Assembly: GCA_003427395.1 (NCBI GenBank)
Contig: BFEA01000008.1
Location: 5,124,291-5,183,268, forward strand
Length of the DNA stretch: 58,978 bases
Direction of reading: 5' to 3'
From: Chara braunii
Lineage: Eukaryota; Plantae; Charophyceae
A program made the position numbers and the translations under genes. The first letter of the stretch is position 1. Each line of letters begins with the position of its first letter. Positions 12,350-46,314 of the stretch are shown here, in pieces. The notes below the pieces were generated by a model that was not told the DNA's origin, searched no databases, and saw only the letters and a program-made list of their open reading frames with translations.

Positions 12350-14400
12350 GCAGACATTGTCTACTCGTTAGAAAAAGAGCACTGTGTTGTCTGCCCAGAG
12401 GGAGAGTATGTGAACACACAACTCTTTTCCATGGCATTTATTGGAGGATGCCTGCAACTTCAGCCCGCTCCGTAGAACCACATGCCAGACATAGACCCGG
12501 ACATTCGTGCGTACATCATGCAGCGCCCAGAGTGTTGTTACCTTTGAGGATAACTCATGGACCCTATGGGATGGTGGCAGAGTGCACATGATGGGAAATA
12601 TTAACTCTTTCTATCACCCAGCGGCAGAATCCCACTTGGTCTGGCTGATCAATCAGGAACAGCATGTGGACGTACGCTCACAAGGTCTACAGCCTCCTGA
12701 GAACTATCCATCTGAACCTCCCCCCCTCCCCTCTACATGGCCAGGCAGCATCCCTCGTGTATACCAGACAGTTTCTACGGCGGGTAGAGAAGTGGTCTCT
12801 CTAATGGATAGTGGTTGTGTCATGCCATTCTGTTTGCTCCATGCTATTCGGTCTCCATACAGCTACAAATCGATGAGAATGCACACGGCATACTACTCCG
12901 AATGCTATGAAGGTATGGCCACTGCCAGGCTCTGCTGCAAAAACTGCAACCCATTGCCTTGCACTCATCATCCCCCCCCCCTCCCTTATTACTCGCCTGA
13001 TATGTCATTGTGGCCTAGGTAGTAGCTGTGAATGTCAGCCTGCTTGCCTGCTGGCATGCCAGCAACATGCCATGTGTCGTCAGCGTTTCCAGGAACATGT
13101 CATTGAAAGTACGTCTCTCTCCTGTGTGGACTATCCTCAATGCCATTACCCAGCCATATCCCCTGTCCCAGCATGCCCTACATGCAGCACTGGGCATACA
13201 CCAGAGCAGCAACAGCAGTCAGATCTCCTTGATCCTTGCCAGACAAACAACAGACACAGCAGCCTGTCTGAGGTGGAAAATAGACTATCACATGAACCAT
13301 CTACAGTGTGCTGTACTAAGAGGTTATCACTGCAACAGCGAGCTGTTGCAGACCGAATCTCGAAACAGCTAAACACCCTTATACTTTGGATCAGCCTTCG
13401 TCGCCGCCCGCCCACAGAGAGGGAACAATTACTGTGGAAACCCAAGAGACTTGCTCAATGCCGCTCTGTGATGGCCCACCTGAGATTCGGTTAGAATGTC
13501 CAATTTGTAGAAAGGGGCTGGATCGGCAATATGCCTATACAATTGTCGCCGGCATGCCTCTGTGTTCCTCTCATGTAGTAGCCTGTGACAGGTCTACACT
13601 GTGCCATTGCATGCCGCAGATGAAACTGCAAGAAATGGATGTGGTGCTTCCATCGCCCACACCCGAAGTGGTCCTGTCCAGTCTCCAGTCTGTAGGAGTG
13701 GCTACTTACCGTAGGGCCTACGCAATGGCAGCTCAACAGCCCAAAGTCTTCTGCAACCCAAACACTGGCTGGCCTCTTGTGCCATTTCTAGAGTAGTCTG
13801 CTCCAGCAGCGAGTATTCAGAACCCTGTGAAGTTCGTCTTTTTTCTTCTATTCGGTTCTTTGCCCCTCCACTTCCCTCCTCTACCTCTTCTCCCTCCCCC
13901 GCTCCCTTCCTATAGAACTCTCACCCCCAGTGCCTACCCCTTTCCTTCCTCCCTCCTCTTGGGTACTAGCAAATTCATATGAATGGGCATCACTAAGAGA
14001 ACAGATGAGATATAAGCTGAAGATCACAAGACAAATGAACAGGAGTATATCTCCCCCCTTTACTCTGCCTCCTTTGTGCAAGTGGGATGTTATGGCAGAC
14101 GGGGATGTGGGGAAACTGGCACTCATCAAGAATTAACATGGCCAGTTTTGCATGTGAGAGTCACAGTAAATAGGGAGCTGGCAAGAACAAATAAAAGGGC
14201 TACCCCAAAGAAAGCCAAAGTAAAGAAAGTCAAGAAAGCGATACAACGGGTCTATTCTGCTCCATATTGCTTGCTATAGAGGGAAAACTGCTTTCTTGTT
14301 GCATCGGCTCATCTCAAGCGTGCTTCATTGTCTGCAATAGAGGTAAAGCTGCTCAATTTTGGATCTACTCATCTGGGTAAAACAGGGGCTGTTGCGGTGA
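12350..14400 (+). pseudogene. Decayed Cys-rich coding-like region of unknown family (repeated at 16305-18355)
   Basis: A run of overlapping +-strand ORFs (12507..13022, 12907..13494, 13386..13796, 13930..14136) in non-repetitive sequence, with CxxC motifs (CVVC, CKNC, CPTC, CPIC). I recognise no family. Confidence 0.3.
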
Positions 14401-14547
14401 AAATCTACAACACAAACGAGTACACAGAAAGTACACAGAGACTGACAGAGTGTTGGTGCCACTAAAGTCCGCCACTTTTCTCAGGGGTCTCACTAACTCT
14501 TGGCAACGTGGTGAGTCCTTCTCCGTCAGTCAAATGCATCCTGGGGC

Positions 14548-14600
14548 GACTGTTGGGGTTCAACCTCGTGAGGAGTCCGTGAAAGTTCAACGAAACAGTC
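14548..14600 (+). ncRNA. Degenerate type III hammerhead ribozyme (subfamily B; artefactual repeat at 18503-18555)
   Basis: gactGTT-ggggttcaacctc-GTGAGGA-gtc..aac-GAAAC-agtc. Stem III gactgt/acagtc is intact. Core C3 is mutated to G and stem II is damaged. Confidence 0.6.
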
Positions 14601-14862
14601 TGGCACAGTCAAGCTTTTTTTGTGGAGTTCTGTAGTGAACATTACAAGACGCACACACACGCATGACCCCTTGTACACATGCACAGTCACTGCCTCACTC
14701 AGACTCAGCTCAGCACCTCACACTCACTCATGAGCTCTCATCCTCAGTCAATCACTGACTCGCCCAATCACCCACTCCCTCAGTCATTCACTCACTCACC
14801 CACAGGCCACCCTTATCGAAAACTCTCAATCAAACAACTCTCTCTCTCTCTCTCTCTCTCTC

Positions 14863-14900
14863 CTGTCTCTTATACACATCTAGATGTGTATAAGAGACAG
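14863..14900. other. Nextera mate-pair junction adapter (Tn5 mosaic ends, head-to-head); library contamination
   Basis: Exact CTGTCTCTTATACACATCT+AGATGTGTATAAGAGACAG. Confidence 0.97.
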
Positions 14901-15695
14901 ACATTAGACCAAGTGCATTGTATCTGTTCCAATCAACTTTAATATCCAATCCCTGGTCCATCAGTCCACATGATTTGATTTGATTTGATTTTTTTNCTCC
15001 GCGTATACGGCCAGCCAAAAGTGGAAACCGCGCCGTTTCCACTTGGCTGAATCGGGCCTACCGGCCCAGGCCCGTTCATTCCAAATTTCGCCCCGCGTAT
15101 ACGGGAGCGTTTTCAGGAAGTACTGGTGGTTTAAGTTTCCACCTATGCAGCTTTCGGATTTTGTCTGCGGAGGTGGCAATCAATCTGATCAGTTCAATGA
15201 TCTGAGCAGTGGTCCATTGGGTCCAAAAAAAAAAAGGGTTCTTAAGCCGCAAGTACACGGCCCCAGCCTTGCAGAAAGTTTTAGTCGCCACAAGCAAAAC
15301 TCGGAGGGGCCGTGCGGCGTTGGGCATCGTTGAAAACAAAAAAAATCGGCAACCAAAGTGGTCCAGGTTTCGTGCTGACACCCGCGGGCCGATGTGTGGT
15401 GTACTGGTGCTTTAAAAAGAAAGAAACCAGACCATGCTTCGGTGTCCTCGACCCAGTCCCAGATATTATAATAGCGACAAGTTGACTTCTCGAAGTTCTC
15501 GTCTAGGCACCAGCCACTCACTCGAGGTTTTTCAACTGCCCGCTGCCCAGGAAACAACAGCTCAGTTGCAGTCCAATGTGTTGTAACTTGTAAGCAACCA
15601 TCATTTCTGCGGTTCTTTTTTTTTTTTTTGGGGGGGGGGCGCGGGGGGGTCAAACTTGGAATGTTTCATTAGGTTATCTTGGCATCAAAACTGCC

Positions 15696-15784
<89 letters not shown>

Positions 15785-18700
15785 CGCCCGTCGCCTCGCC
15801 GCTAGTCAAATCATGCCACTTCCCGCTTCGGCCCCGCTCGTCGCCTCGCTAGTCAAAACATGCCACTTCCCGCTTTGACCCGGCCCGTCATGTCGCTTCA
15901 GCCCCGCTTCAGGCCCCACCCGTCTCAATTTTCCCGACTGCACGTGAGAGTGGTACCGCATCGGCCCATCTGACCGGGTCGGGTCTTCCCCCACACTTCA
16001 ACCGCCCCGCCCCTGTCCCCTGCCACCCGGCCCGGCCTTCCTTTCCCTACGGAACATGTCCGCCACCGTTCCTGCGATGCTGTGCTTCGCCGGCCTCCGG
16101 CGGCCAGCGCGATTCACTTCCCGGTGCCGGGCTGGACCCTCCCTCCGCCCTCAAGTGTACCGCTCGGCCCGCGCGCCGGCCGGGTTTCTGCTGGGCCCCA
16201 CGCTGGCCCCTTTGCATGCGTTAACAGTATATTAGAGACTACATTACAGGAAAAAAGGGATTCGGACCCTTAACCATAGCAAACTCTATACTGTTTCTGA
16301 TGTTGCAGACATTGTCTACTCGTTAGAAAAAGAGCACTGTGTTGTCTGCCCAGAGGGAGAGTATGTGAACACACAACTCTTTTCCATGGCATTTATTGGA
16401 GGATGCCTGCAACTTCAGCCCGCTCCGTAGAACCACATGCCAGACATAGACCCGGACATTCGTGCGTACATCATGCAGCGCCCAGAGTGTTGTTACCTTT
16501 GAGGATAACTCATGGACCCTATGGGATGGTGGCAGAGTGCACATGATGGGAAATATTAACTCTTTCTATCACCCAGCGGCAGAATCCCACTTGGTCTGGC
16601 TGATCAATCAGGAACAGCATGTGGACGTACGCTCACAAGGTCTACAGCCTCCTGAGAACTATCCATCTGAACCTCCCCCCCTCCCCTCTACATGGCCAGG
16701 CAGCATCCCTCGTGTATACCAGACAGTTTCTACGGCGGGTAGAGAAGTGGTCTCTCTAATGGATAGTGGTTGTGTCATGCCATTCTGTTTGCTCCATGCT
16801 ATTCGGTCTCCATACAGCTACAAATCGATGAGAATGCACACGGCATACTACTCCGAATGCTATGAAGGTATGGCCACTGCCAGGCTCTGCTGCAAAAACT
16901 GCAACCCATTGCCTTGCACTCATCATCCCCCCCCCCTCCCTTATTACTCGCCTGATATGTCATTGTGGCCTAGGTAGTAGCTGTGAATGTCAGCCTGCTT
17001 GCCTGCTGGCATGCCAGCAACATGCCATGTGTCGTCAGCGTTTCCAGGAACATGTCATTGAAAGTACGTCTCTCTCCTGTGTGGACTATCCTCAATGCCA
17101 TTACCCAGCCATATCCCCTGTCCCAGCATGCCCTACATGCAGCACTGGGCATACACCAGAGCAGCAACAGCAGTCAGATCTCCTTGATCCTTGCCAGACA
17201 AACAACAGACACAGCAGCCTGTCTGAGGTGGAAAATAGACTATCACATGAACCATCTACAGTGTGCTGTACTAAGAGGTTATCACTGCAACAGCGAGCTG
17301 TTGCAGACCGAATCTCGAAACAGCTAAACACCCTTATACTTTGGATCAGCCTTCGTCGCCGCCCGCCCACAGAGAGGGAACAATTACTGTGGAAACCCAA
17401 GAGACTTGCTCAATGCCGCTCTGTGATGGCCCACCTGAGATTCGGTTAGAATGTCCAATTTGTAGAAAGGGGCTGGATCGGCAATATGCCTATACAATTG
17501 TCGCCGGCATGCCTCTGTGTTCCTCTCATGTAGTAGCCTGTGACAGGTCTACACTGTGCCATTGCATGCCGCAGATGAAACTGCAAGAAATGGATGTGGT
17601 GCTTCCATCGCCCACACCCGAAGTGGTCCTGTCCAGTCTCCAGTCTGTAGGAGTGGCTACTTACCGTAGGGCCTACGCAATGGCAGCTCAACAGCCCAAA
17701 GTCTTCTGCAACCCAAACACTGGCTGGCCTCTTGTGCCATTTCTAGAGTAGTCTGCTCCAGCAGCGAGTATTCAGAACCCTGTGAAGTTCGTCTTTTTTC
17801 TTCTATTCGGTTCTTTGCCCCTCCACTTCCCTCCTCTACCTCTTCTCCCTCCCCCGCTCCCTTCCTATAGAACTCTCACCCCCAGTGCCTACCCCTTTCC
17901 TTCCTCCCTCCTCTTGGGTACTAGCAAATTCATATGAATGGGCATCACTAAGAGAACAGATGAGATATAAGCTGAAGATCACAAGACAAATGAACAGGAG
18001 TATATCTCCCCCCTTTACTCTGCCTCCTTTGTGCAAGTGGGATGTTATGGCAGACGGGGATGTGGGGAAACTGGCACTCATCAAGAATTAACATGGCCAG
18101 TTTTGCATGTGAGAGTCACAGTAAATAGGGAGCTGGCAAGAACAAATAAAAGGGCTACCCCAAAGAAAGCCAAAGTAAAGAAAGTCAAGAAAGCGATACA
18201 ACGGGTCTATTCTGCTCCATATTGCTTGCTATAGAGGGAAAACTGCTTTCTTGTTGCATCGGCTCATCTCAAGCGTGCTTCATTGTCTGCAATAGAGGTA
18301 AAGCTGCTCAATTTTGGATCTACTCATCTGGGTAAAACAGGGGCTGTTGCGGTGAAAATCTACAACACAAACGAGTACACAGAAAGTACACAGAGACTGA
18401 CAGAGTGTTGGTGCCACTAAAGTCCGCCACTTTTCTCAGGGGTCTCACTAACTCTTGGCAACGTGGTGAGTCCTTCTCCGTCAGTCAAATGCATCCTGGG
18501 GCGACTGTTGGGGTTCAACCTCGTGAGGAGTCCGTGAAAGTTCAACGAAACAGTCTGGCACAGTCAAGCTTTTTTTGTGGAGTTCTGTAGTGAACATTAC
18601 AAGACGCACACACACGCATGACCCCTTGTACACATGCACAGTCACTGCCTCACTCAGACTCAGCTCAGCACCTCACACTCACTCATGAGCTCTCATCCTC

Positions 18701-19539
18701 AGTCAATCACTGACTCGCCCAATCACCCACTCCCTCAGTCATTCACTCACTCACCCACAGGCCACCCTTATCGAAAACTCTCAATCAAACAACTCTCTCT
18801 CTCTCTCTCTCAAAACACCAATGCCAACTTTACTAGAAGTTTGTTTCCTCGCAAGAAGAACAAGAACAAGAACAAAACGGAAACGAAAAGAAGAAGAAGA
18901 AGAAGAAGAAGAAGAAGAAGAAGAAGCAAAGAAGAAAAAGGCAAAGGTAAGTGAAGGAGAAGGAAGAGATAGAGGAGGAGGAAGATAGAGTGGGCGAGAA
19001 ATAAAGATTGTGATGCCGACAGGGGTCGCCCACTGCCTTCATGACGGCACGGTGCAAGTGCATGGGGGGAGGAAGCGGTAGCTCCAACAGTCCGAATGCA
19101 CGACCCCATGTGCTCAAAGCCCATCCGAACCTGGCTCCATATGGCGCCTGGAACCAACCACAATTCAAAAACAATACAATGTGGCCTGTCGATACAAGCT
19201 GATCGATGGCCCAGATTGTTTGTTTTTTTTTTTTTTTTTTTTTCCCATTCTTTTTCAAGTTGTGTACCTCTCTGAGTCTCTGCCCATTTTTTTCTCCCCT
19301 TGGGCGTTACGACACCCCTCTCATAGCCCCTGATTACCTCGCTGCAGCCTGTGCCTATTTTGCACAGGACCAAGATACTCATTACCCAGGTCTCACACTT
19401 CCTTCTTTTCTTTTCCCCATTTTTTGGCTTTCCCAGGTAAAAAGGGGTTGGCTTGCCAGGGCCCAGCTGTCTGGTCAGGCCAACCTAAGCCACATACAAA
19501 AAAAGATAGAAAAACTTTGAACAATGGAATTTTCAATCT

Positions 19540-19648: not shown

Positions 19649-20089
19649 CCATTCAACTGCATGTTTGCTACCAAGACGGCGACCAAATCACAGTTTTCTT
19701 CTTCTTCTTCTTCTTAAAGGGCGACGGCCTCGAGATATCATCATTGAGCTGACCGGCCGCAAGTAATGAATTCAGAATTATCATTTATGTCTGATCGTTT
19801 CGGGGTTCGAAGTCGTGTCTGTATTTCAACAGTTCATGGGTGTACCAACAAATCATAACTCAATCTGAGCCTGAGAGTCATTTTTTAAATAATACACGAA
19901 AAGTCTTTGTTCCTTTGAAAATTACACAAGCCTCCTGTAGTATAACACCATACATCGTCATAGGGAACTGCCCAGTGAATAGTATACGACGAGTGAGGAG
20001 AGGACAACACACAATAGGACTGTGACAGACTTCTTCGTCGGAGTTTCACCGACTCATACCCTGTACATTATATACAAGTCCTTCATAAA

Positions 20090-20151
<62 letters not shown>

Positions 20152-20991
20152 CACACACACACACACACATACACACACAATCAGTTTTATGCCTGTCAAT
20201 CTTTTACCTGTTGTCTGTCCTCCCTCTGAATTTTTCTAAGTATTTGACCGTGTGCCCAACTGAGCACCCTTAAGTAGTGCCAAACAGTCGGTGGTTCCAC
20301 GTCTGGAGTGCCTACTGCACTCTTAGGGGGGGCGCTCGGGTCGGGGTGTATGTGTTGCCTGTGGGTGATGACGGATGCTCGTCCGAGTGTCTCCCTGGCT
20401 CAGTGGGTGGTGACAACCAACAGTCTGCGGGGTAATCGTGATGTGAGTAGGTCGTGTGCCGCTTTGCTCCGTGTTGGATGTGTGCACGGCCTCGTCTGTG
20501 CTCCGCCGCTGCCCTGCTCCCTGTCCCGCTTGCTTCGCATGTGGTTCTTTGCAGGTTGATGTGTTCGCTGTGTGGTGTGGCCGTGTTGTTGGTGTTGCCT
20601 TCCGCTTCGCTGCTCAGCTGCCTTGCTGCCCTTCCGCTGGTCATGCCTATTTGCTACTTGCGGGCCTTGTTGGATGGTTGCCTTCTCGCTGATGCCTTGT
20701 GCTTCGCTCCACGTTTGCTGAGCTGCTGGTCCGCTCGCCCTGTCGTCCCTTGCAGTGTGATTACCTTGCTTGTGCTGCCTTGTGCTTCACTACATGGCTG
20801 CCGCGCTGCATGTCGTGATTGCCATGTCGTTCCTTGCGGTCGTTTTTGGCGTTGTGCAGCCGTGTTGCCTCTACTGTGTTGCCTGGTGCTCCACAGGGTT
20901 GCTGCCCGCTGCTATGTTCCGCTTGGGGACAGCCTGCCTTCAACAAGGGCAAAGGGTTCATGACCCAAACCATCAAATATGGAGATTCCGC

Positions 20992-21047
20992 AGATTGTCG
21001 AGGGTTCAGCCTCCTGATAAGTTGGTGCAACTCCGACGAAACAATCT
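20992..21047 (+). ncRNA. Type III hammerhead ribozyme (G8->A variant, probably impaired)
   Basis: agattGTC-gagg(gttcag)cctc-CTGATAA-gttgg(tgcaact)ccgac-GAAAC-aatct. Confidence 0.8.
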
Positions 21048-21403
21048 CTCATCATCGGTTTTTATTTTTCTCGGTCTTTGAAACTTTTATGGACTTGTAC
21101 ATTTTTCTGATTTGCCTACCATGTATGCTCGTTTACCGTCTACAGTCCTATATCCGTCGGGCCTGCCTTCCAGCCCTCGTTCATTTTTTTGTTGCCTGCC
21201 GTGTCTGCTGCTTGTGTATTGTCTTGCCCTCCTTCCTCCCCCATGCCCTCCAACCTATGTGTTGTCATGCTGCTTGTGGCCTGTGTGTTTCATTGTCGTC
21301 CCTTCCTTGCCTTTTTTTGGACTCATCTCCACTCAGATGCGTATTGTCCTCCTCCTCCTGAAGTGTTGCGATGGTATGGTGCATCGTTTTTACTGTGCAC
21401 AGG

Positions 21404-21441
21404 CTGTCTCTTATACACATCTAGATGTGTATAAGAGACAG
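21404..21441. other. Nextera mate-pair junction adapter; artefact causing a 157-bp duplication
   Basis: Exact 38-mer. 21247-21403 is repeated at 21442-21598. Confidence 0.97.
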
Positions 21442-21642
21442 CCTCCAACCTATGTGTTGTCATGCTGCTTGTGGCCTGTGTGTTTCATTGTCGTCCCTTC
21501 CTTGCCTTTTTTTGGACTCATCTCCACTCAGATGCGTATTGTCCTCCTCCTCCTGAAGTGTTGCGATGGTATGGTGCATCGTTTTTACTGTGCACAGGTG
21601 TCCGTAATATGTGTTCACACACACATACACACACACACACAC

Positions 21643-22723
21643 AATCAGTTGCCTGTTTGTCTGTTTTCTTGTTGTTGTCTGTTCTCCCCCTAATCTTTTC
21701 TGTGTTTTTGTTACCCAAACTGAGCACCCTGAAGTAGTGCCAAACAGTCGGTGGTTCCTCGTTTGGAGTGTCTACTGCACTCTTATGGGGGCCGCTCAGT
21801 TCGGGTTGTCTGTGTTGCCTGTAGGTGATGACGGATGCTCGTCGGAGTAACTCCCTGGCTCAGTGGGTGGTGGGAACCAACAGTCTGTAGGGATCAACCG
21901 TGATGTGAGTAGGCCATGTGCTGCTTTGCTCCGTGTTGGATGTGTGGACTGCCTCGTCTACGCACCACCGCCGTCTTGCTGCCTGTCCCGCTTGCCTTGC
22001 ATGTTGCTCTCTGCAAGTTGCTGTGTTCATTGTGTAGTGTGGCTGTGTTGTCGGTGTTGCCTTGCGCTTCGCTGCTCCGCTGCCTTGCTGCCCACTCGCT
22101 GGCCGTGCCCTTCGTGTTTCCGCGCTGCGCGCCATGTCTTCCTTGCAGTCGTTTTTGGCGTTTTGCAGTNGGGTTGCCTCTACTGTGCTGCCTAGTGCTC
22201 CACAGGGTCGCCGCCCGCTGCTGTGTTCCACTTGGAGACAGTCTGCCTTCATCAAGGGTCAAAGGGTTCATGACCCAAACCATCTAATACGGAGATTCCC
22301 GCAGATTGTCGAGGGTTCAGCCTCCTGATGAGTCATTGCAATTCCGACGAAACAATCTTGTCATCATCAGTTATTATTTTTATTTTTTATTTTTTTCGGT
22401 CCTTGAAACCTTTATGGACTTTAATTTTTTCTGGTTTGCCTGCCTCGTGTGCTTGTTGTTGTCTGCTGTCTTATATCCATCGTGCCTTCTAGCCCTTGCC
22501 TTTTTTGCCTGCTGTATCTGTTGCTTGTGGGTTGCTTGCCCTCCCTCCTCCACCGTGCCCTCCAGCCCATGTGTTGTCTTTCTGTTTGTGGCCTGTGTGT
22601 TTCGTTGTTCTTACTTCCTTACCTTCGGACTCACTCCACTCAGATGCGTATTCTCCTCCTGAAGTGTTGCGGTGGTATGGTGCATGGTCTGTATACTGTG
22701 CAGACGCGTCCGCAATATGTGTT
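21643..22723 (+). mobile_element. Hammerhead-containing non-coding repeat, copy B (tandem with A)
   Basis: Diverged homologue of copy A (e.g. cccaaactgagcaccctgaagtagtgccaaacagtcggtggttcc; aatatgtgttcacacac end). Flanked by (CA)n at 21615-21642 and 22724-22850. Confidence 0.75.
22303..22358 (+). ncRNA. Type III hammerhead ribozyme (intact core)
   Basis: agattGTC^gagg(gttcag)cctc-CTGATGA-gtc(attgcaattcc)gac-GAAAC-aatct. Predicted cleavage after 22310. Confidence 0.85.
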
Positions 22724-22787
22724 CACACACATCATCACACACACACACACACACACACACGCGCGCGTGCGCGCGCAAACACACACG

Positions 22788-22846
<59 letters not shown>

Positions 22847-23712
22847 ACACCAGCCTATGCCCTCACACATGCATCGCTAAGAGTCCTAAGACTGACTCTT
22901 CGCTGTACAGAAACGACAAAAGAAACAGAAGGCATGGCAGGACGCAATTTGCATAGCGTTGAGAGAAGAGAAGTGAGGGATAAGCCCAAGCAAGGAGATG
23001 TAAAAAGCTCATAGTGAAAAGCTGAAAAGCTGAAAACCCATAACTATTATAATAACAACAAAGTTAGATAACTTGAATAGAGCTGATGAATTAGGCTTTT
23101 AGAGAAATTTGGAAACGCTCACTCCAGTTTGAAGTACCGAGTCCAGAAGAGAACAAATCTGGAATCAAAGCAACGCTAATACATGCTATACTATTGTGCA
23201 CACAGTATCGCAATTTCTTTCTTTTCACCAAACCATTCTTGTGGTTCTGTTTTTGCCATTTTAAACGATTCTTTTGAATTTCTTTTGGCCACTTCCACCG
23301 CCATTTTCGCAGCGGTTTGGCGATTATGACCCTACTGATCGGACTCTCCCCGCCTCCTTCAATAAGACTTCCTTATGTAAATATGTAAATGCGGAAGTCA
23401 ATCCAAGTGGTATTCACTATTTACTATTTACATAAGGAAAAGGATAAAGATAAGATTTTATGAATCCCAACTGAATCACAAGGAAGAAGGAAGAAAAGGG
23501 GAGCCGAATGTCGATGCCGTCGAGTCGCTGTCAAGTCCCCCTCGAGTCGCCGTCAAGTGGTGGCCATCGAGTCAAACGAAACCAAGAAGATAGTTGATTA
23601 TCGGGACCTGAGCAGCATGGTTCACAAATTCCGCAGCTTCCGCCTCTGCATACCAAGAAGGAAGGCTAGCGTTTTGGCAGCACCAAAGGAAAAAGCCTAT
23701 TCTTGTTGTCTT

Positions 23713-25343: not shown

Positions 25344-25353
25344 NTCTCTCTCT

Positions 25354-25421
<68 letters not shown>

Positions 25422-25537
25422 GTGTGTGTGTGTGCGTGTGTGTGTGTGTGCGTGTGTGTGTGTGTGCGTGTGTCTGCTCGTTGTCTGTGAGTGGTGTGCA
25501 TGTGTGTTCCAAACAATCACCACTGCAACCCCTTTTC

Positions 25538-25598
<61 letters not shown>

Positions 25599-26665
25599 TT
25601 CTGAGGTGAATGTAGATGAAAGGGAAATCCAAGATAACACACAGGTGGGCAAATTTGTCTAGTTACCCTGGTTGGACTGCCTGCGAAGTACTCGTTGAGT
25701 TCAGTCCGGGACCATAGGAGCGGAGACTCTACTGCAAGCTGACCTCTTCCTCTTTGACGATCTAGCTCTCTGATATAGGGATACCAGAAAGACTCCTTGC
25801 CTCTCTTCTTTTCGTACATAAGATAGAGAGCCAGGCACGCAAGTTCCGACAACTTATTTGTCGTGAGCAGCTCCGCTGTTCCACATTACCATCATCAAAA
25901 CCAGACACAAATCAAATCAAATCGCATCAAACCAAATCGACGAAACAAGAGAAGAAACCAACAGCTTCAGAGAAGACACAGATAACACCACCTCAAGGAA
26001 ACAAACAGCCTTTTTTTTTTTTGACAAAACAGATTCAGAATCGGCTGAGCGTACCCAGGACTCGTCCATAATTCCATATTAGTTCCCGTCGACTCCATGA
26101 AACAAACTATAATGAAATCACAAAGTGTCCTAGTCGTACAAGCTACACAACGACCAAAGTTTCGTAAAATGAAATCACAGAGTGTCCGAGTCGTACAAGC
26201 TACAGAACGAGCAAAGTTCCAAACACACCTGGGCACAATAAAATCAGCCATCCACCACTCTCTACATCAATAAGCTTAAAAGAAAATCAAGAACGCAATG
26301 ACAATTAAAAAGAAGAGGGGATCTGCGGTTGGCCGGGAAGGGGGAAAACACAAAAGAGCAGCGATCGCAAGATAGACAGAGAGAAGAAAGCTGCGATGAT
26401 GTTTCTCCTCCTTCCTTGACCACAACATCGTCTGACAATTCACTGTCCCCTCATCAATTTGCTGAATGTTTTTCTTTTCTACGTGCCAACAATTCCAATC
26501 CATCCTCCTTCCAGACATCCGTGCAAAGTGGAACGATACAGACTATTACAGAGCAGATTTTTAGCATGGCCCCTGCGGACGAATGACCCGCATAAATCGA
26601 GAAATGGTGCAAGACTGCAAATTAATTGTCTTTTTTTAAGAGAAAAAAAATCCTGTGCTGTTGTG

Positions 26666-26722
<57 letters not shown>

Positions 26723-31088: not shown

Positions 31089-31109
31089 NNNNNNNNNNNN
31101 NNNNNNNNN

Positions 31110-31153
<44 letters not shown>

Positions 31154-34100
31154 GTTTTTGTGTATGTTTTTTCTTTCTTCAAGTTTCTTGTACTTTTCTA
31201 AGAACTTTTGGGGCCCCTAGCTGAGCACCCTCAAGCAGTGCCAAACAGTTGGTCATTCCTCGTTCGGAGTGCCTGCAACACTCTTAGGGGGGCCGCTCAG
31301 TTCGGGATGTCTGTGTCTTCTGCGGGTGATGACGGATGTTCGTCTGAGTGATTTCCTGCCTCAGAGGGTGGTGGGAACCCACAGTCAGTGGGGTTAACTC
31401 ATGATGTGAGTAGGTCATGAGCCGCTTTGCTCCGTGTTGGATGCTTAGACTGTCTTGTCTGCGCCACCGCTGCCTTGCTGCCCGTCCCGCTTGCTACACA
31501 AGTCTCCTCGCTGCTCTGCTGCCTTGCCGCCGACCCGCATGCCGTGCCTTCCGTGTCCATAATGCAGCTGTCTTTGGCGCTATGCAGTTAAGCTGCTTCG
31601 GCAGCGTTGCCTGGTGCTTCGCTGAGTTACGGCTTGCTGCTATGTTCCGCTTGTGTGCCTTACTCCTGTGCTGCCTTACTGCCCATCTGCATGCTGTGCC
31701 TTCAGCGTCCTGGAGTCGTCTTTGGCAATATGCAGTTGAGCTGCTCCTGCAGCGTTGCCTGGTGCTTCGCTGAGTTGTTGCGAAAGGCCTTCCACGATTC
31801 AGACCCAAATTCGGACTTCAGGGTCAGATGCCCAGGTCAAGAAAAGGCCGAGTTCGTCAAACTCAGAAAAGTCACAATCGGGTACCTCAGCAGTGTGGTC
31901 CAACAGGCACCCAGCAAACAGTCACGTCTCAAGGACAAGAGTCACGTCTCATAATAAAAACCATTCAGAAGAGTCACATCCCACGACTGAAAAGGCAGAT
32001 TCACCAAGCAAGAGTCATGTCTCAAAGGTAGGAGTCACGTTTCCTAATGAGAAGTCATATTGAAGAGACACATCCCACGAGTAAAAGGTAGAATCACAGG
32101 CAAAGGTCGTGACCCACAGGCAGGAGTCACTGTTCACAGTCAAAAGTCAGGTTCACAAGTGAAAAGTGACGACTCAAAGGCCCAAGCAGCAGCAGTCCAA
32201 TGGACATTCGGGAAGGTTCCAGGCCTTGACATTCAGTAGCAGACAGGCCGTGGGGATGTGGTACCGGAACCAGTCAGGACCCAAGAAACAGAGGCTGGCA
32301 CGAGTTGAAGTGCAAACCAAGACTACAAAAGGACTTGCCAACCTCACATTCAGGGAGATTGCTCATTCGCAAAGAGTGTGGAAGTGCTGGTGCACTTGTG
32401 CGCTATTGTGAGGGGCAGAGTGCTTAAGCCAGAGTGCTGCGCAAAGAGGGAGAGAGAGAGAGAGGAAGACAGCCCTGGCAGAGAGAAGGCAGCCATAGCT
32501 GCGCCAGCACAGGGTGTTAGTGTTAGTATTTAGTAGTAGTCTTCAGAGAGTTAGTAGAGTTAACAGTGGGTGTATTCCGAGTAGATCTTTGAAGGGTAGA
32601 AGTCGGTGTGCATGTGCATGCATGTAGGGAGAGAAGATACAGCGAGATCAGGAGCTAGAGAGAAGACCAGCAAGGAGGGTGATACAACTAAGAGAAAGAA
32701 GAGCAGGGAGGAAGGCGAAACTTACCTGGGTGATCATGTTGGATTATTGGATACCTCTGACATGCGCTGATGTGCGTTGGTGACTCGGAACTCTTATTGC
32801 TCTTGTATAACTTGTTGGAATTCATAAGCTGCGTTATTCTGGTCTTAATCTCTCTGGTCTTCAGTGTGAACTCCGTGTGATCTCGTATATGCATGAAGTG
32901 TGAATATGTGCATTCACTAGTGTTGAACTAGAAGGTTCATTGCAGTTGCCCCGCTGCTGTGTTCCGCTTGTGGACAGTCTGCCTTTCAAGGTTCATTGCA
33001 GTTGCCCAGCTGCTGTGTTCCGCTTGTGGACAGTCTGCCTTTCAACAAGGGGATCAAAGGGTTCATGACCCAAACCATCAATACGAAGATTCTGCAGATT
33101 GTCGAGGGTTCAGCCTCCTGATGAGTCGGTGCAACTGCGACGAAACAATCTATCATCATCCAGTGCTGGGCCGGCAACCGGCCGGTTGAGCTAACCCGGT
33201 CCAACCGGAGCCGGACCAGACCAAGGGGGGTGAACCGGGAAACCGGTTTTGAAAAAAAAGTGCCCAAATATCTTTTTTTTCTGGGGGGGGGGGGCAGATT
33301 CCGACTGCGCTCTTCAAGAGCTGTCCGAATCCGCAATAAAATTTTCAAGGTACAACACTTTTCAGGGGGCTTCCAGAGGGGGGCAGGGGGTTATTATTGA
33401 CATATTCAGGCAACTATGGCTTCCTCGGGGAGGGGTCAAGTAAGCAAGTTCACTAATCCGACCCCCCCGGTGGCTGGAGCACTTCGTGGAGTATGTCATT
33501 TGATATTGATAATACCCCACGAGCTGAACCAGATATGATGAGAGGAGGTCCTTGCCCGAAATTATAGCTCTTCCAGAGTATATTTCGACAGCAGAAAAGT
33601 TATGGTTCCAGCTTTCTGCTCGTGGAGGCAGAGCGTTTTCCGTTTGTTGGTTCCTACATAAGATGAGTTGTCAGTCCGGAAGTATCTTGCCTGGCAGTCT
33701 GTCCAGATACATGTAGTGGAGCAAGGTCCATTCGAGATAGATAGAGAGAAGAATATGGGCCTCGCTGCACTACTCTCGAAATGTGCAAAACGAGAGTGAA
33801 TCTTCCNCTAGAATTCGGAAAGATACACCGCCAAGATTTTTGCCTTTTGTGCATGTCGAGAGTAGTGCAGNGANGCCCTATAGCTTAGGTCCATTCTTGG
33901 GATTGCACCTCGGACGGCTCTGAAATCACAATTCCAAAATCCGAACCCATAACTTTTTCCACAGATGGCAGGGACGTCGCAGAAGGATATAATCTCAGCA
34001 GAGTCTCATCAGAAGCATAGTGTTCCCCTCGTAGCTGAGGGTGAAAGAGCATCAGATGTTGCCACTGGTAACTGGTCCATTGGACCACAAGATGACAAAT

Positions 34101-35914
34101 TGGATTAGGCCCATTAGGGGCCGGAAGACCCACATCTTAGGAAAAATGCATGGCTGTTCTCCGCTGCTGATCTGCACAGATCAGCGGCGGATATCCTCTG
34201 CCTGTTTTTCTTATAGAAATGGGGTCCTGGCCGATCTTTGCCGCTGATCTGCGACGATCGGCGGCCAAGATTGGCCACTTTCTGTACTTGAAAAATCCGG
34301 GCCTACAGGACCCGGTTTCGAAATTGCGGGGCACGGCCCGCCCCCACGACGCCTCGGGAACACATACGCGCCGACAAAAAAAAAAAATTCAGCCCCCAGC
34401 AAAAATGCGCTGGGGGCAACCGGGAGGGAACTGGCCCGGGCCACCGGCCGGTCCAACCGGGAGGACCGCGAATGGGGTAGGGGTCCCCGGTCCATCCGGG
34501 GACCAGCCCTGCCATCATCAGCTTTTATTTTTGTCGGTCTTTCGATTTTTTTGGGACCTGTATTTTTTTCTGGTTTGCCTGTTTGGTGTGCTTGGATGTT
34601 GTCGGCCTTCCCTCCTCCCCCCGTGCCCTCCAGCCTATGGTTCACCTCACTGCTCTTTTGCCTTCATGTCTCTTCGCTTGCTTGGTTTTGGCTGCCTTGA
34701 TGCTTTTCTTGTCTGCCTGGCCTTGGCATCCTGTTGAGACTGGTTTCTTTGGTTTGCCTGCTTGGTGTCTTTGCGCGTTGTCTGCCCTCCCGCCTCCCCC
34801 ATGCCCTCAAGCCTATATGTCTGGAACTTTGGACAGCTGGTCATGGATAACCACGTACGTATGTACGAGGTAGCTCGCTTCATGAGTAGTAATGGTAGAG
34901 TCGCAACATACAGCGTTACTTTGGTTACGGCAGGGTGGTGTGTACCATGGGTTCCTTCGGTGCATGGTGAGTACACCATGGGATGACATTGGACACGCGG
35001 TCACACACCCAAAAAAGACAAAAACAAACAGAGAGATCATCTGAGAATGAACCTATGTAAGAAGAGTTGGTGATTGCTGACTTACCGTTCCTGTTGCCGT
35101 AAATGGGAATGCATCTAACTCATTTTCATCAGTAATGTGAGCAAGGCGCAGGTAGGGAAGCATGTCCAAGACCGCCTCCCTCTCCTTGCCACGATAAATC
35201 TGCAGATGAAAACAATTGGACCAACCAAGGAACGCATAGTAAGTCATCACAGATTCACAATCACTCAATGCAGTTACAAGACGTAGACTCCTCTGTGTTT
35301 GTGCTTGCTTATTCTGCATGAGCATGAAGCAGCAATCCAACAATGAATTCTTGAACATTGTAGGTTAAAAAACAGCCACCAAGAGACAGAAACAAACCCT
35401 TCATCAAACAGTAATTCAACTTAATAGTTAGAAAATTAAGATTCTGCACAAACGACTCAGGGAGTCACTTTCACGGAGGTCTGTGATGACCAAGAAAAAC
35501 AGAGAGACGCACAGGCATCCAGAATACAGAAGCCCCGCTAACAGCATTGCATGCACTCGTAACGAGGACGGACTTACTATATGGCACATCTTGAGGGTGC
35601 TGCACGTAGACATTGAGGAGAACATGGGAGGAGGCCAGACCGTGCACAAAATGGACAACACAAACAACATACTTGAAATGAGGGCAAGAAAGGAAATAGA
35701 GAATATGAGTGTGTGCTGTCATTGTTCGTTACACACAAATACACACAAAAAAAAAAGGCAGGGATGTGCCCGACTCATCAGAAGGTTGAACCCTGGCAGT
35801 CTAAGTACGATGCATTTGACTAACGGATAAGGATTACCCATGTTACCCACAGTTAGCGATATACCCGTGAGAAAAGTGCTAGACTTTACTCACACCAACC
35901 CATGTGGGGGGGGC

Positions 35915-40166: not shown

Positions 40167-41797
40167 TATTTCTGCTTCTTCTTCTTCTTCTTTATTTCTG
40201 TTCTTCTTCTTCTTCTTTATTTCTGCTTCTTCTTCTTCTTCTTCTTTCCCTCTCTCTCCTCTCAAGTTCATTCATTTCTTTTTGCAATTGGACGCCCGTG
40301 TACTTTCTGATGAATGTGTACTTCGAAATTGGCCAGGATCATAACATATCCATTCTTCTCTCGCCTTCATGATCACAGTCCAAATTCAAAGTACGCACCC
40401 ATTTAATTTGCGCACAGCCAACATGTCAGGATTGTTTTGTGTAGTGTGCAGTAATTGGGCTTAAGTAGGCAGAAGGGAAGAAGCTCTAACAGGCGCCGTT
40501 GATGTATGAAGGGAGGGGTCTTAATGGGGACCCGACTCCCTCAAAATTGTGGAAAGACGTCTTCCCAGCAAGATTCAACGACCCTCGAACAAGGAAGGAA
40601 GGAAATTCTACGCCAACCCCTCTTCCGCAGTCCAAGAATCAGAGACAAACAGGGAAAACCCCTCATACCCTTACAGCAAGGGATACAAAGTGGGGAACTT
40701 GGGTGAAGCGTGGAGTACGGCAGATCAAGTATCTGTGGGAGGGAGATAAGCAGCGGTGGAAGACCGCCAGGGAACTCAGAACGGGACTGAAAGCCAGTCA
40801 TAGACTGCTGGAGAATTTGAACGACCTCCTCATATCAATTACAGAGGAACGAACAAGGAAGCTACAAGGGGAAACTCAGCGGGGGTTGGGAGACTGGGTC
40901 ACATGGAGGCAGGAGAGCGAACCAAGGGGTCGCATGGAGGCAGGAGAGCGAACCAAGGGGTCACATGGAGGCACGAGTGCGAACCAAGGGAAGCCTTCCG
41001 CATCTGGAGTCGGGAGTCGACAAGGAAGGAATGGTTACACGGCAGATATGTATACCATCGTGATCCCAGAAGGTTCCACTACCGTCTTCACCCGAATAGA
41101 ACACCCCGTCATTATAGCCGTATCTGGTTCAACTTTCAGTCTAGGTACAGCGATAATGACCGGGCGTTATATTCGGGCGAAGACGGTAGGATTCTCGACA
41201 AAAAACAACCACGATGCCGGTTACTATCCAGCGACAGCAAGTGCGCAAGGTAAGGGTGGTAGAAACGGAGGCGTTCATAATCTACAGCCCAACTACCCCG
41301 GTGGAAGATTTGGAAGTGGACCCGGGGGAATGGGCATGGAACCTGCCAGGGGGAAGACTACGAGTGGCCAGAAGGATCAACACGCTAAACTACACCACGC
41401 ACATAGGTTATCGCCTGAAAAGGCGTTCCTACCCTCTAGCAGCAACCCTGTCCAAACTCTGGGAGAGCAGGGTGTGGGTTCCCCGGAACAGCTGCCAGGA
41501 ATTCCAATGGACGTTGATAAATACGATACGCATGGGGAGGGTTAAGCGCATGCAGTGGCTGATTGCCCACGTGGCACTACCGGTCAATGTCTGGTTTAAA
41601 CGAACGCCGGAGCAAGGAACACAGAGACCCAGCCAACGCGCTCTGTATGGTCTGCCAGGAGGGGGTTCCGGAATCCATGACTCACTGTCTCCTGACATGC
41701 CCAGAGGCAGATTGCCTACGGGAGAAGGCCAAGGCATCGGCTCCATTTCCCGAGAACACAATCACACTTCTGTTAGGCAATGATAGGACATGGCAAT

Positions 41798-41878
<81 letters not shown>

Positions 41879-44800
41879 CCCGATCACATATGCTTTGTAG
41901 GGTTCCTCTTCCCAGATAGACAAAGCGCACCTTCCAGCTGAAAAGGCAGTACACGCTGTGGACAATTTGGAAGAGGCGCTGTCAGATCACCATCGAGGGC
42001 AACGCACAGGCAGGAAGCAGCTGAGATCCTTTACAGCCTACTGGACATAGACTTCCAAGCACAATGGAAAAGGACACGCAGGCAGCTCCGGCAGCACCCA
42101 GACCAGGCGCAGAAACTAAAGGGCCGGTTTTCTTCAAAAGGTTTTAGGCAGAGGCGGAGTAGCCACCATTCAGGGATCGAGGATTTGCTGCAGATGGAGA
42201 ATGGCGGGACGCAGTTAGAACGGGACAGGGAATAGAGTAGAGCACTTCGTTCCAAGAATAAGAATTTATAGAGGAGGTCCAGGAGGAGAAAAAGAGAGGT
42301 AAGTTAAAGAAAAAAGGTCATAGTCATATCCTTCCTGATTAAACAGCCGATGTGGGAATAGAAGGTAGTAGGGGAGGAAACCCATGAGAAGAAAGGCTGT
42401 TTAATCCAGAGTCACATTCTTCTCATGGGTGTAGTAAGGAAGGAAAGAGGGAGGAAACCCATGAGANNNNNNNNNNNNNNNNNNNNNNNNNNNNNNNNNN
42501 NNNNNNNNNNNNNNNNNNNNNNNNNNNNNNNNNNNNNNNNNNNNNNNNNNNNNNNNNNNNNNNNNNNNNNNNNNNNNNNNNNNNNNNNNNNNNNNNNNNN
42601 NNNNNNNNNNNNNNNNAGAGGGAGGAAACCCATGAGAAGAAAGGCTGTTTAATCAGGAAGGAGGGTGGTAAGAAAGGTCCAAATACGTTCAAACTTCAAA
42701 GAGAGCTGAAGGTAGTAGGACAGAATAGACAATGTTGGGATAGAAGATAGGACGAGGGGAAGAAGGGACAATAAGGGGTTGGTTAATAGATAGTGATTTA
42801 GGACACTAGGCTCTAAACCTAAGGGACCTAAGGAAACTACTTGCACAGGTCACATCATAAGCGAAACTGGCTAACTCCGGGTCGAATTGTGAGTACAGGC
42901 CCTAGACTCAGACTGTACGGGGAACTCACAATTCGACCCAGGTCACATCATAAGCGAAACTGGCGCAATTTTATTTTTTTTTCTTCTTAAGAGAAAGGCA
43001 AGTCATTTCAATAGAAGATTGAAAATCGATGCCGGATAACTCCGGGTTGAATTGTGAGTTCCCCGGCCTCGATTTTCAATCTTCTAAGGAAATGGCTCGC
43101 CTTTCTCTTAAGGAAAAATAAAAATAAAAATTGCGCACAACCTACCAAGGGGTGTGGCAATCTACCGGGCGAGAGGGGGGGGAGGAGGCAGGGGGGTATC
43201 AGGGCTTAGCCACAAAACATCTCAACTTTACACCCTCTCTATCTCGACACCATAGACTCTTGACTGTGACGAAGACCGGCTTCCCCGATACAGCAGAGAC
43301 GTCAGCACACACTGGGTCAAGCAAAGCATGGTTGACTTCTGTTAGTGCATGATCACGGAGCTCCGGCATGTCAGTTGTGCGGTGCAGTTGATGAAAAATC
43401 CACAGACTGACTTCGAAAAGCAATCATCAGCCGCATCATCACTTTGGCAACAGAGGAGAGTAAAAGGAGTAGCAAGAGAATAGAAGGGGAGTAGAGATGG
43501 AGAAAGAGAAGAAAAGAACATACGCAAATACGTAAAAAATCCGAACGCGACGTTAATTAAAAATATAGCTATGAAAACCAGCGGTATGACCCGACTAGTT
43601 TCGGCTGGCCCGCTAACCAGCCTTCATCAGGGGTCTTCAGTTGTTGTGTTGTGTGCGAGTTGGTTAGGTATATAGGTGGTAAGAATCTGGTCTAGTGTTT
43701 TCTCTAATGGACCAGTAACGGTCAACCAAAAAAAAAAGTAGTACTAATGAGCCAGACCAGTTCATATTTTGGTTACCTGAGGCTCGTGGCAAAGCCGAAA
43801 TGGCACCAACGGGCCTAGCTCAGTTGGGGCACCCATGAACTCTTGAAATACAGACCCAAGCTGAAGTCCAGACGTAATCAGATGAACAGAACAAAATCAT
43901 TCTGAATCCAGGCTACCAGAGTGGCCCGGGTCCACTTGCCCGGCCGGGCCGAAAAGATATTAAAAAATAAAAAATATATTTTTCTAATTAAAATTTTTGT
44001 TTCAAATTTGGTAAAGAATTTCGATGTGACCCTGAGGCAAAAGTTGTTCAGTTTATTTTTCTGCATAACATAGGTTTTTTTCGGATTTTTTGGATTCTTT
44101 TTTTTTTTTTTTGGCTTGGACCTTCCCTAGTCCTTGCACGGCCGAGCCGCCCGGAAAAATGGGGTGACCCGGGCGGTCCGGCTGGTAGCCTAGTTCTGAA
44201 TTACCTGAGGCCGGTCAGTTCAATGATGAAATCTAAGGGCCGTTGAAAAAAGGGGGGAAACAATAACAAAAAAAAAAAAGGTGGAAAAGGGAAATAGGAA
44301 AAAGGAAAACAAAGGAAAAACAACGCCTGAAAAACCCTTCAACAAAGGCAGAAACAATGTACTGCCTAACTAGCTTTCCAGCCCGGGCGTCCAGGGAACC
44401 CCACCGTGCGCAGAATGGCGCCCGGGGCGCCCGGCCAGGCTACCCCCCCAAGCAGGCACCCGGGCGCCTCTCGCACCGAGGCAGAAAAAGCCTCAAAAAA
44501 AGTTTCGCGCCGCCGCCATATTCCGAATGTGCCACCTTCTTTTTTGGCGGTCGGCACATTTTGGGGGGGGGTCCAGCCCGTTTGTAGGGCTTTTTTTTTT
44601 TTTGGATTCTGGCAGTCAATCTGCATCGATCGACAGCGCGCACTGATCCAATTTGAATCCTGGGCTCCTCCTTTGTTTCTTCTTCTTCTTGTTCTTCTTC
44701 TTCTTCTTCTTTTCCCCCCCAAAAATAGCTTGGCACCACATAACCCGGAAGACCTCCAAAGGTGGGTTGGGGATAATCGACCCCAAACAAGAAACAAAAG

Positions 44801-46282
44801 CCCTACAGATAAAATGGATAGTCAAATTACTAACCCAACCAAGAGTGGCATGGCACAAACTAGCCCTAGACAGCATCAGAGCCTTAGCTCCAGTTCAAAC
44901 TCCTGCCAATATGTTGGGCTTGTTCTGGGTAATGAATAAGGACTGGACCCCGAAAACCGGTAGGAGAAGACGACGACCTAACCCACAACGGAACGAAGCC
45001 CAACTGTCAACACCCTACTGGACAGCCCTTATCGTAATTTGGAGAGGACTTCAGCCGAACAAAGTAAAGAAACCCAAATCGAAAGAAGAAGTACTTCATC
45101 AGCTCCTATTCGGGAATCAATATGTGAGGGATGCAGGGGATCTCCCTCTGTCGCTAGCAAAGGGCCAAAGCTGGCTTTCGTGGGTCCGACATGGAGTACG
45201 GAGGGTAGAGCACATCTGGGACCAAGCGAAGAAGGACTGGATTGATGAAGAACAACTGAGACATCTGCTAAAGGGTTGCGGTAATCGGCATAACAATCTG
45301 ACAACGGTCGTGGACAGCATCCCCGATGGGTGGAAAGAACTACTAAAGAAAAAATTTCATGGAAATCAGGAGAATGGGGGGTGCTGATCCAGGATTCCGC
45401 ACCCGAGAAAGCATACCAGTTTCACCGCAGATGCCCGGGCTCAGACCTCTCAGGAGTATTCATGTCTTTTCCCATAAGCCGGTCCAATCCCAACTCGTTC
45501 TCCATCCACAATATTGACCCTCAGGAAACTTTCTTTTTTTGTTTTCCCCCTCTTTCTGCGTTTCTTCTTTTCCTTCTTCTTCGTCTTCGCCTCCCTCCTC
45601 CCTCCTCTGACGTCGCGCTCCTCCCTCCTCGCGCCCCCCTCCTCGCACCCCCTCCATCACCTCGCCCCCTCCCTCCTCCCTTCTCCCTCCTCCCTCCCTC
45701 CTCTGACGTGATGCTCCTCCATCCTCTCTCCCTCCTCTGACGTGGCACTTCTCCCTCCTCCCTCTGAATTGACACTCCTTCGTCCTCCCTCCTCCCTCTG
45801 ACGTGGCGCTCCACCACAGGTGGGACACAGCAGCTGCTGTACCCCCCACGCCGCAAACGGGCAGTCGATACTCCAGACCACTTCTACAAGCCCCCCTCCC
45901 CACAACATACAGAAATCGACATGCATGAAAATAAAATCAGAGGCCGGATTTGGGCACTACTCCCAAAGCCTAGCAAGGTCTGGCAGCCAAAAAAAAAAAA
46001 AAAAAAAAGCTCAGTGGTTTTTTTGCGTGCCCGGGGCACCCCGTGCGTGGTGCCTGGGGCGCCCGCCCAGCCATCCCGGGAAAGCTAGCTGCCTAGTACC
46101 TACTACCTACAGTGCATACCATTTAAAGACAAAAGAAAAAAGTCCAAAACAAACTAATCGATGGAAAAAGACAATGCCTGGAAACCCTTTCATTGCAGGC
46201 GGAAAGAATGCACCAGCTACCACTATTCATTCGCAAAAGAGAAAGTTTAAAAAACACATCGACAGTTGTTCAGGACATCCGT

Positions 46283-46314
<32 letters not shown>

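Follow-up and report, generated by a model that had tools for sequence, protein, structure and literature searches.

The charophyte alga Chara braunii carries, within a 58,978-nt stretch of contig BFEA01000008.1 (assembly GCA_003427395.1, positions 5,124,291 to 5,183,268 of the forward strand; hereafter the window), three related units, A, B and C, each of which contains a type III hammerhead ribozyme and lies in (CA)n microsatellite DNA. The three are old, decayed insertions of one subfamily of a very abundant, non-coding retroelement of about 1.1-1.2 kb. We consider it probable that the units are non-autonomous elements copied into (CA)n by the Chlamys-type Penelope-like elements of the same alga, because of the (CA)n targeting, the head-to-tail pairing of A and B, the hammerhead, an adjacent inverted fragment and the absence of coding capacity. 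An earlier note, written from this DNA alone, had proposed a candidate new replicon family at the locus. That proposal is not supported, as Chara Chlamys elements with hammerheads and (CA)n targeting are already published (PMC8557442), yet the hybrid anatomy that the note described (free of long terminal repeats, or LTRs, (CA)n-delimited, head to tail and of type III) stands, and corresponds to neither the angiosperm nor the metazoan retrozyme pattern.

Units A and B are colinear from end to end and lie head to tail at 81-84% identity, as seen by self-BLAST and MAFFT alignment, and C matches both at 80-90% identity, which bears out the two diverged tandem units and the third copy first described. 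C lies only 8.4 kb from the A-B pair, and all three share a rare 3' module. The common layout begins with a 77-nt leader that opens with AATCAGTT, followed by a conserved 5' domain of about 250 nt and a variable block of GCTGCCTTGC-like repeats; further downstream come a conserved pre-ribozyme block, the type III hammerhead, a 3' module of 365-410 nt and a terminal UGUGU/ACACA hairpin (Table 1). The 5' domain is 81.5-87.5% identical between copies and has no codon periodicity. The variable block (20570-20894 in A, 22032-22203 in B) is made up of a degenerate repeat of about 41 nt (TTGC..GTGCTGCCTTGTGCTTCGC-like), and the 170-nt difference in length between A and B is explained by the presence of four copies of this repeat in A and two in B. 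In base composition the units are A-poor, with 14% A.

Table 1. Features of the three units and of the related hammerhead relics, in window coordinates, with DNA read depth on parts of unit B (summed word depths, in thousands)
Feature	Position	Strand	Basis or remark	DNA depth (thousands)
(CA)n tract upstream of unit A	20087-20180	+		
Unit A	20179-21614	+	Self-BLAST, MAFFT alignment; about 1241 nt without the assembly artefact	
Conserved 5' domain of A	20258-20500	+	Counterparts 21718-21968 in B and 31219-31470 in C	
Type III hammerhead of A	20992-21047	+	RF00008	
Tn5 assembly artefact in A	21401-21602	.	Mosaic-end palindrome and direct repeat	
(CA)n tract separating A and B	21615-21647	+		
Unit B	21643-22723	+	1081 nt; self-BLAST, MAFFT alignment	
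77-nt leader of B				about 2
5' domain of B	21717-21968			110-197
Pre-ribozyme block of B				140-254
Type III hammerhead of B	22303-22358	+	RF00008	300-537
Subfamily-specific 3' module of B	22359-22723	+	Read depth; predicted UGUGU/ACACA hairpin from A and B, running into (CA)n	
B-type 3' module, part with depth	22365-22720			0.4-3
(CA)n tract downstream of B	22724-22851	+	Short (CG)n interruption	
(CA)n tract upstream of C	31108-31153	+	Follows a (CT)n tract and a gap of Ns	
Unit C	31150-34830 (end approximate)	+	Self-comparison; two insertions inside	
Type III hammerhead of C	33096-33151	+	RF00008	
Sister-family relic	14547-14601 (artefact repeat at 18502-18556)		Model R1; short post-ribozyme tail	
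Sister-family relic, decayed hammerhead fragment	20027-20081	-	Model R1, 22.8 bits, E 6e-4	
Sister-family relic	35756-35802	-	Model R1; internal deletion from stem II into the tail, then a T run and (TG)n	

The limits of the units are set by microsatellite DNA. All three open with AATC(A)GTT immediately 3' of a (CA)n tract, and both A and B terminate in ...AATATGTGTT(CA)n. CA-rich tracts make up 0.88% of the window, and four of the ten such tracts flank units, always with CA on the ribozyme strand. The (CA)n boundaries reported in the earlier note are thus present at every unit start and at the ends of A and B, and the enrichment of (CA)n at copy boundaries, the lack of which the note had named as evidence against its idea, is found within the window.

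Unit C is incomplete. It lacks the last 170 nt or so of the unit together with the 3' (CA)n, and it is broken by two later insertions, at about 31780-32930 and at 33165-34507. In the first of these, 1.15 kb long, AGTCACGTCTCA-like motifs recur and there is also a (GA)n run; at its right edge lies a local duplication of 56 nt (32935-33046). The second, of 1.3 kb, begins just past the ribozyme and resembles a non-autonomous DNA transposon of the hAT type. By eye, it shows terminal inverted repeats that begin CAGKGCTGG and a flanking target duplication of 7-8 bp (YCATCATC); the inverted repeats listed by the repeat finder were all internal.

Unit A, for its part, contains an assembly artefact. 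A Tn5 mosaic-end palindrome at 21401-21444, with a 22-nt perfect palindrome, is accompanied by a 157-nt direct repeat of 100% identity (21247-21403 and 21442-21598). This palindrome and exact duplicate confirm the 195-bp adapter artefact that had been suspected, and its removal reduces the distance from the predicted cleavage site of A to that of B from 1311 nt (20999 to 22310) to about 1116 nt. A second Tn5 mosaic-end palindrome, of 38 nt, lies at 14863-14900 between two 3.8-kb blocks (11042-14856 and 14997-18811) that are 99.6% identical, and this palindrome with its flanking blocks is an assembly artefact of the same kind.

Full-length matches to the Rfam model Hammerhead_3 (RF00008) were obtained in unit C (47.1 bits, E 8e-8), unit B (42.1 bits, E 2e-6) and unit A (32.4 bits, E 0.0012). 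All of these fall below the gathering cut-off of 48.5 bits, and a default Rfam scan accordingly reports no hammerhead in the window. Despite the sub-cut-off scores, E-values down to 8e-8 argue that these matches, along with that of a further copy on another contig (L002, see below), are not due to chance. The alignments to RF00008 run end to end and define a type III topology, in which loops close stems I and II and the 5' and 3' ends meet at the open stem III; the type III hammerhead first recognized by eye in all three units is thereby upheld. Stem III, AGAUUG(U)/(A)CAAUCU, has 6-7 bp, and stem I, GAGG/CCUC, has 4 bp and a 6-nt loop. The core boxes CUGAUGA and GAAAC enclose a closed stem II, which varies from 3 to 5 bp across copies. 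A GUC triplet forms the cleavage site, and cleavage is predicted after C20999 in A, C22310 in B and C33103 in C.

The three ribozymes differ in their state of preservation. When compared to the catalytic core CUGANGA...GAAA with an NUH triplet, B and C conform (CUGAUGA, GAAAC, GUC) and A does not: its core reads CUGAUAA, in which the catalytic G8 is changed to A, and its minimum-energy fold is an alternative structure rather than a hammerhead. The ribozyme of A is probably inactive. Copy B has an intact core, with two stem II pairs lost to private changes at 22335, 22336 and 22342 and only 3 bp of stem II left, while C is the best preserved of the three, with an intact core, a 4-bp stem II and, alone among them, a hammerhead as its minimum-energy fold. 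Among the window copies, then, only C keeps an intact predicted ribozyme, and that of B is weakened. Nearly all sequencing reads carry G, G and C at the three altered positions of B, letters that give a 5-bp stem II, and with these family-majority letters the B ribozyme folds at minimum energy into a canonical hammerhead (-16.9 kcal/mol).

The comparison among copies points to constraint as well. At one position of stem III the pair is U-A in all three units, where three relics of a sister family (see below) have C-G, a compensatory change. The shuffle statistics are weak, with six distinct sequences, and 59 of 500 shuffles reach the observed score. The three full-length RF00008 matches, the canonical fold of the consensus and the compensatory stem III pair together identify the motif as real and under constraint.

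The window copies belong to a much larger population, as became evident when reads were placed on unit B at 85% likeness. The reads came from four runs under a single species label: one of DNA, two of raw oligo-dT RNA-seq and one of uncertain kind. The very different DNA depths over different parts of the unit (Table 1) place the 5' domain and ribozyme in a very abundant family, whereas the 3' module marks a minor subfamily. Where the 5' domain of B departs from the family majority, the changes are B's own and absent from A. These private differences, in combination with a family DNA depth of 110-537 thousand, imply that the units are copies of a mobile element and not local duplicates. The notion that A, B and C arose by local segmental or tandem duplication, or are a satellite with a relic hammerhead, might draw on the adjacency of A and B, the proximity of C and the rare 3' module common to all three, but it is highly improbable and comes close to being refuted by the family-level depth, with the expression of the family, the further copy in the unrelated contig L002, the private mutations of B and the precise coincidence of unit boundaries with (CA)n all speaking against it.

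The family is transcribed. Over the 5' domain of the B copy the RNA depth is 120-500 and one strand outweighs the other 10:1; since read-through from host genes would yield both orientations, the bias points to transcription driven by the element. Over the ribozyme, RNA reads occur in both orientations, and the reads contributed by other families lean the opposite way. Because the two groups of ribozyme-covering reads have opposite strand biases, one of them must be sense to the ribozyme, whatever the library convention. Few RNA reads are specific to the locus itself (10 and 21 at >=99%).

Much of the signal over the ribozyme comes from a second family. Most ribozyme-covering reads part from B after GAAACA and run into another tail, which is uniform among them (644 and 1440 reads, agreement 0.93), and many others have (TA)n upstream; reads with this tail or the upstream (TA)n represent a sister family. 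A covariance model of our own, R1, detected three decayed relics of this sister family in the window. The relic at 20027-20081 is 5'-truncated and inverted with respect to the units, abuts the (CA)n tract that precedes A, and forms with the A ribozyme a 35-nt inverted repeat that is 80% complementary. Its post-ribozyme tail resembles the majority tail in the reads, and this inverted neighbour of A belongs to the sister family and not to the A/B/C unit. The two families have nearly the same ribozyme core. The sister relics have a short post-ribozyme tail and the C-G pair in stem III, whereas the units add a 250-nt 5' domain, the variable block and a 365-nt 3' module, and sit in (CA)n.

A second head-to-tail case was recovered from outside the window. 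When metagenome contigs were scanned for a 22-nt ribozyme pattern, two came up, L002 and L001; a 36-nt pattern gave no match. Across its 5' domain, variable block and ribozyme, L002 (BFBZ01011546.1, 1534 bp, assembly GCA_003427375.1) matches A and B at 80-88% identity. The ribozyme has GUA in place of GUC at the cleavage site and scores 37.1 bits, again below 48.5, with RF00008. Past a divergent 3' region there follow a (CA)n tract, the start ATCAGTTTTATG and a second 5' domain, and the first and last 86 nt of the contig are identical, which gives a cycle of 1448 bp. At the least, L002 holds two copies head to tail, and the 1448-bp closure fits a tandem array or a circle. A short internal (CA)n at about 1008-1020 is followed by some 290 nt unlike the units, and the 1448-bp period may comprise an element plus a spacer. 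The other contig, L001 (Ga0310121_10001590, 4237-4265, GC-rich), shares the 22-mer GGGTTCAGCCTCCTGATGAGTC and has no hammerhead beyond it by Rfam or R1; it was set aside as a probable chance match. Protein searches added little: the spurious 180-aa open reading frame (ORF) of A found no candidates in a collection that evidently lacks the unannotated ORFs of the main genome, and the 135-aa ORF of L002 returned only L002 itself.

The absence of coding capacity was examined in several ways. The longest open piece in the units is 124 codons, against a mean of 127.5 in A-poor shuffles, and there is no third-position excess among variable sites, which are distributed over codon positions as 9/4/4 and 16/21/23. 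As the open frames match the expectation for 14% A, the idea of the unit as a coding element was rejected. No LTR pair was found, since A and B align over their whole length with no distinct central region, and no unit contains a tRNA-Met primer site at up to two mismatches, the window-wide count being at chance level. These shuffles, alignments and scans support the earlier statement that the units have no conserved ORF, LTR pair or primer binding site. A circularly permuted layout, in which the 5' leader would be homologous to post-ribozyme sequence, was also considered and rejected, as the local alignment scores of 21-28 lie within the range of shuffles (maxima 25-35). For the 5' domain, RNAalifold predicts 91 pairs, including a CUGAGC/GCUCAG closing helix, with only one pair that changes on both sides among three sequences. 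The same domain contains a degenerate hammerhead-like string, CUGAGCA...CCAAAC, to which Rfam gives no match.

How might such a non-coding unit be propagated? Craig et al. (2021; PMC8557442) found Chlamys elements at very high copy number in Chara braunii, described two types from this alga with canonical hammerheads, one of them a 3' hammerhead, and reported insertion targeted to (CA)n and (C)n with frequent 5' truncation and partial tandems. In Naiad, the animal sister group of Chlamys, they also observed adjacent inverted 5'-truncated copies. These published elements account for the LTR-less, tandem, microsatellite-bound anatomy of the units. On the reading we favour, the reverse transcriptase (RT) and GIY-YIG nuclease of Chlamys-type elements would supply the copying in trans, the units encoding nothing themselves. 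Copying would proceed by target-primed reverse transcription at nicked (CA)n, and reverse transcription would probably start in the AC-rich 3' hairpin or in the (CA)n run of the RNA. Partial-tandem products are a hallmark of the Penelope-like class, and the hammerhead would serve to trim read-through or multimeric transcripts to unit length. Some of these steps have precedents in the Penelope-like element studied in vitro by Frangieh et al. (2024; PMC11167929), in which reverse transcription starts in an AC-rich stem loop and ribozyme cleavage is dispensable. The UGUGU/ACACA hairpin at the 3' end of the units may, we infer, parallel that stem loop. No RNA-seq reads end at the ribozyme site in that study, and the same absence is seen on unit B, where read starts and ends do not pile up at 22310/22311 and reads cross the site, in two oligo-dT RNA-seq runs that are blind to circles. 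At this locus the system is dead or nearly so, because only C has an intact ribozyme and C is broken by two insertions.

Several observations weigh against copying by Chlamys-type elements. A Pfam scan of the ten largest ORFs in the window found no RT, GIY-YIG nuclease or gag domain. The A-B divergence of 13-19% fits one dimeric insertion or two separate ones. At 365-410 nt from the 3' end, the ribozyme is deeper within the unit than would be expected from the published "3'-HHR" label (HHR, hammerhead ribozyme). Finally, most transcripts of the subfamily may be antisense to the ribozyme.

An alternative that deserves attention, though it is unlikely, is that the units are true retrozymes. Here transcripts of tandem copies would be cut by their hammerheads into monomers of about 1.1 kb, (CA)n included; after circularization by a host ligase, the circle would template reverse transcription, possibly by a rolling-circle mode, primed on genomic (TG)n. 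This scheme overlaps with copying by Chlamys-type elements in the supplier of the RT and differs in requiring a circular RNA. The head-to-tail arrangement of units that each carry a hammerhead speaks for such a scheme, as does the position of (CA)n within the repeat period, seen in the window and again in the 1448-bp cycle of L002, and whole monomer numbers bounded on both sides by (CA)n are in keeping with a circle primed at its (CA)n. The canonical fold of the family-consensus ribozyme and the conclusion that at least one group of ribozyme-covering reads is sense are likewise favourable. Circles of viroid-like RNAs and plant retrozymes are highly structured; the 1117-nt hammerhead-to-hammerhead monomer, by comparison, has no excess of structure over shuffles (z = +0.10). 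The lack of any excess of read starts or ends at the predicted site of B also counts against a retrozyme, though the two runs concerned are ill suited to the question, as does the lack of reported back-joined reads, whose joints would mimic linear tandem sequence. Two of the three window ribozymes are damaged, and cleavage is dispensable in the one Penelope-like element studied in vitro. All told, the circular step finds no support in these data, and we regard it as rather unlikely that this streptophyte alga harbours a very abundant, LTR-less, microsatellite-targeted type III retrozyme whose RNA is cleaved and joined into circles of about 1.1 kb.

It is quite improbable that the units are instead akin to short interspersed elements (SINEs), mobilized by a long interspersed element (LINE) whose RNA ends in (CA)n. 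The hammerhead would then be a passenger, as in the SINE-like Sm-alpha element of Schistosoma, the (CA)n that closes each unit would belong to the element as its tail, and copies would land in (CA)n by annealing of that tail to nicked (TG)n. The units do end in (CA)n and have a common, defined 5' end, and an exact RNA polymerase III A-box consensus (TRGCNNAGTGG; TGGCTCAGTGG) occurs in the 5' domain at 20396-20406 in A and 21856-21866 in B. Two window ORFs, at 40499-41783 and 44653-45387, resemble by eye the C-terminal part of LINE ORF2; they have no Pfam match, and the one protein match, a weak one, is to a JGI metagenome protein. That said, the A box is broken at two positions in C, no B box is conserved, and the 5' domain has no similarity to tRNA, 5S or 7SL and no other Rfam match. 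A tail alone would leave unexplained the (CA)n found upstream of every unit, and head-to-tail pairs with an adjacent inverted fragment are typical of Penelope-like elements rather than of SINEs. No LINE was found whose 3' end matches.

Two other features of the window lie apart from the hammerhead units. A stretch of 1348 bp, which includes (TG)n/(CA)n tracts, is present twice at 100% identity, at 25345-26692 and 48869-50216, 23.5 kb apart, and would represent either an assembly duplication or a very recent segmental duplication. Within it lies a sub-threshold U6-like match (26509-26618, repeated at 50033-50142). U6 small nuclear RNA matches above the Rfam cut-off occur at 46265-46365 (94.7 bits), at 8856-8959 on the minus strand (63.2 bits) and at 47288-47396 (59.1 bits); with their indels, the two lower-scoring matches resemble retro-copies.

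The locus itself is decayed, and no functional consequence attaches to it. Of interest is that a type III hammerhead is here joined to the build of a non-LTR, Penelope-like passenger, and this in a lineage near the land plants. Should the Chlamys link and the activity of the ribozyme be confirmed, the proposed origin of retrozymes as non-autonomous Penelope-like elements would reach beyond animals into the green lineage. The units would then provide a natural series of ribozyme variants, intact in C, weakened in B and dead in A (G8 to A), and the role of cleavage in retrotransposition would become testable in a second, very distant Penelope-like group. Much of the background is published, namely the hammerhead ribozyme, the Chlamys elements, their (CA)n targeting and, for animals, the Penelope-like origin of retrozymes. 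A non-coding family of about 1.1 kb, bound to (CA)n and carrying a type III hammerhead in a streptophyte alga, is undescribed in the literature searched.

The closest known relatives in structure are the Chara Chlamys elements themselves (Chlamys-2_cBra and the endonuclease-less, or EN-less, PLE-X type), which combine the same host, a canonical hammerhead, (CA)n insertion, partial tandems and very high copy number (PMC8557442). These elements span 3.3-8.2 kb and encode an RT, with or without GIY-YIG and a gag-like protein, whereas the units are about 1.1 kb long and non-coding. The likeness is drawn by published description only, and non-autonomous hammerhead families are not described in that work.

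Metazoan non-LTR retrozymes (Cervera and de la Pena 2020; PMC7229834) resemble the units in being non-coding, in lacking LTRs and a primer binding site, in consisting of head-to-tail units that each carry a hammerhead, and in their likely dependence on Penelope-like elements. Indeed, Li et al. (2026; bioRxiv 10.64898/2026.07.22.740005) propose that they are non-autonomous derivatives of such elements. They differ in that their hammerheads are of type I, stem III being weak, that their units, about 150-400 nt long, form extended tandem arrays, and that circular RNAs have been demonstrated. The units described here have type III hammerheads with a stem III of 6-7 bp, measure 1081-1241 nt, are seen only in pairs and are bound to microsatellites.

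Angiosperm LTR retrozymes (Cervera et al. 2016; PMC4918200) share with the units a type III hammerhead, membership of the green lineage, a non-coding sequence and a spacing of about 0.6-1.1 kb between ribozymes. They are built, however, on LTRs of about 350 bp that hold the ribozyme, a tRNA-Met primer site and a polypurine tract, with 4-bp target duplications and dependence on Ty3/gypsy elements; the LTR pair and the tRNA-Met primer site are the parts not found in the units. According to a 2020 review (de la Pena et al., PMC7761336), type III is the hammerhead form of plants and of the circular RNA pathogens of plants, and type I that of animals and Penelope-like elements; the review left the origin of the ribozyme in plant LTR retrozymes open and suggested horizontal transfer. 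Were the circular-RNA reading of the Chara units true, the type III ribozyme of plant retrozymes would have been in the green lineage before land plants and horizontal transfer would be unneeded, and the units would be the link so far missing between two groups: in animals, the non-LTR retrozymes of type I, and in flowering plants, the type III LTR retrozymes together with viroid-like RNAs.

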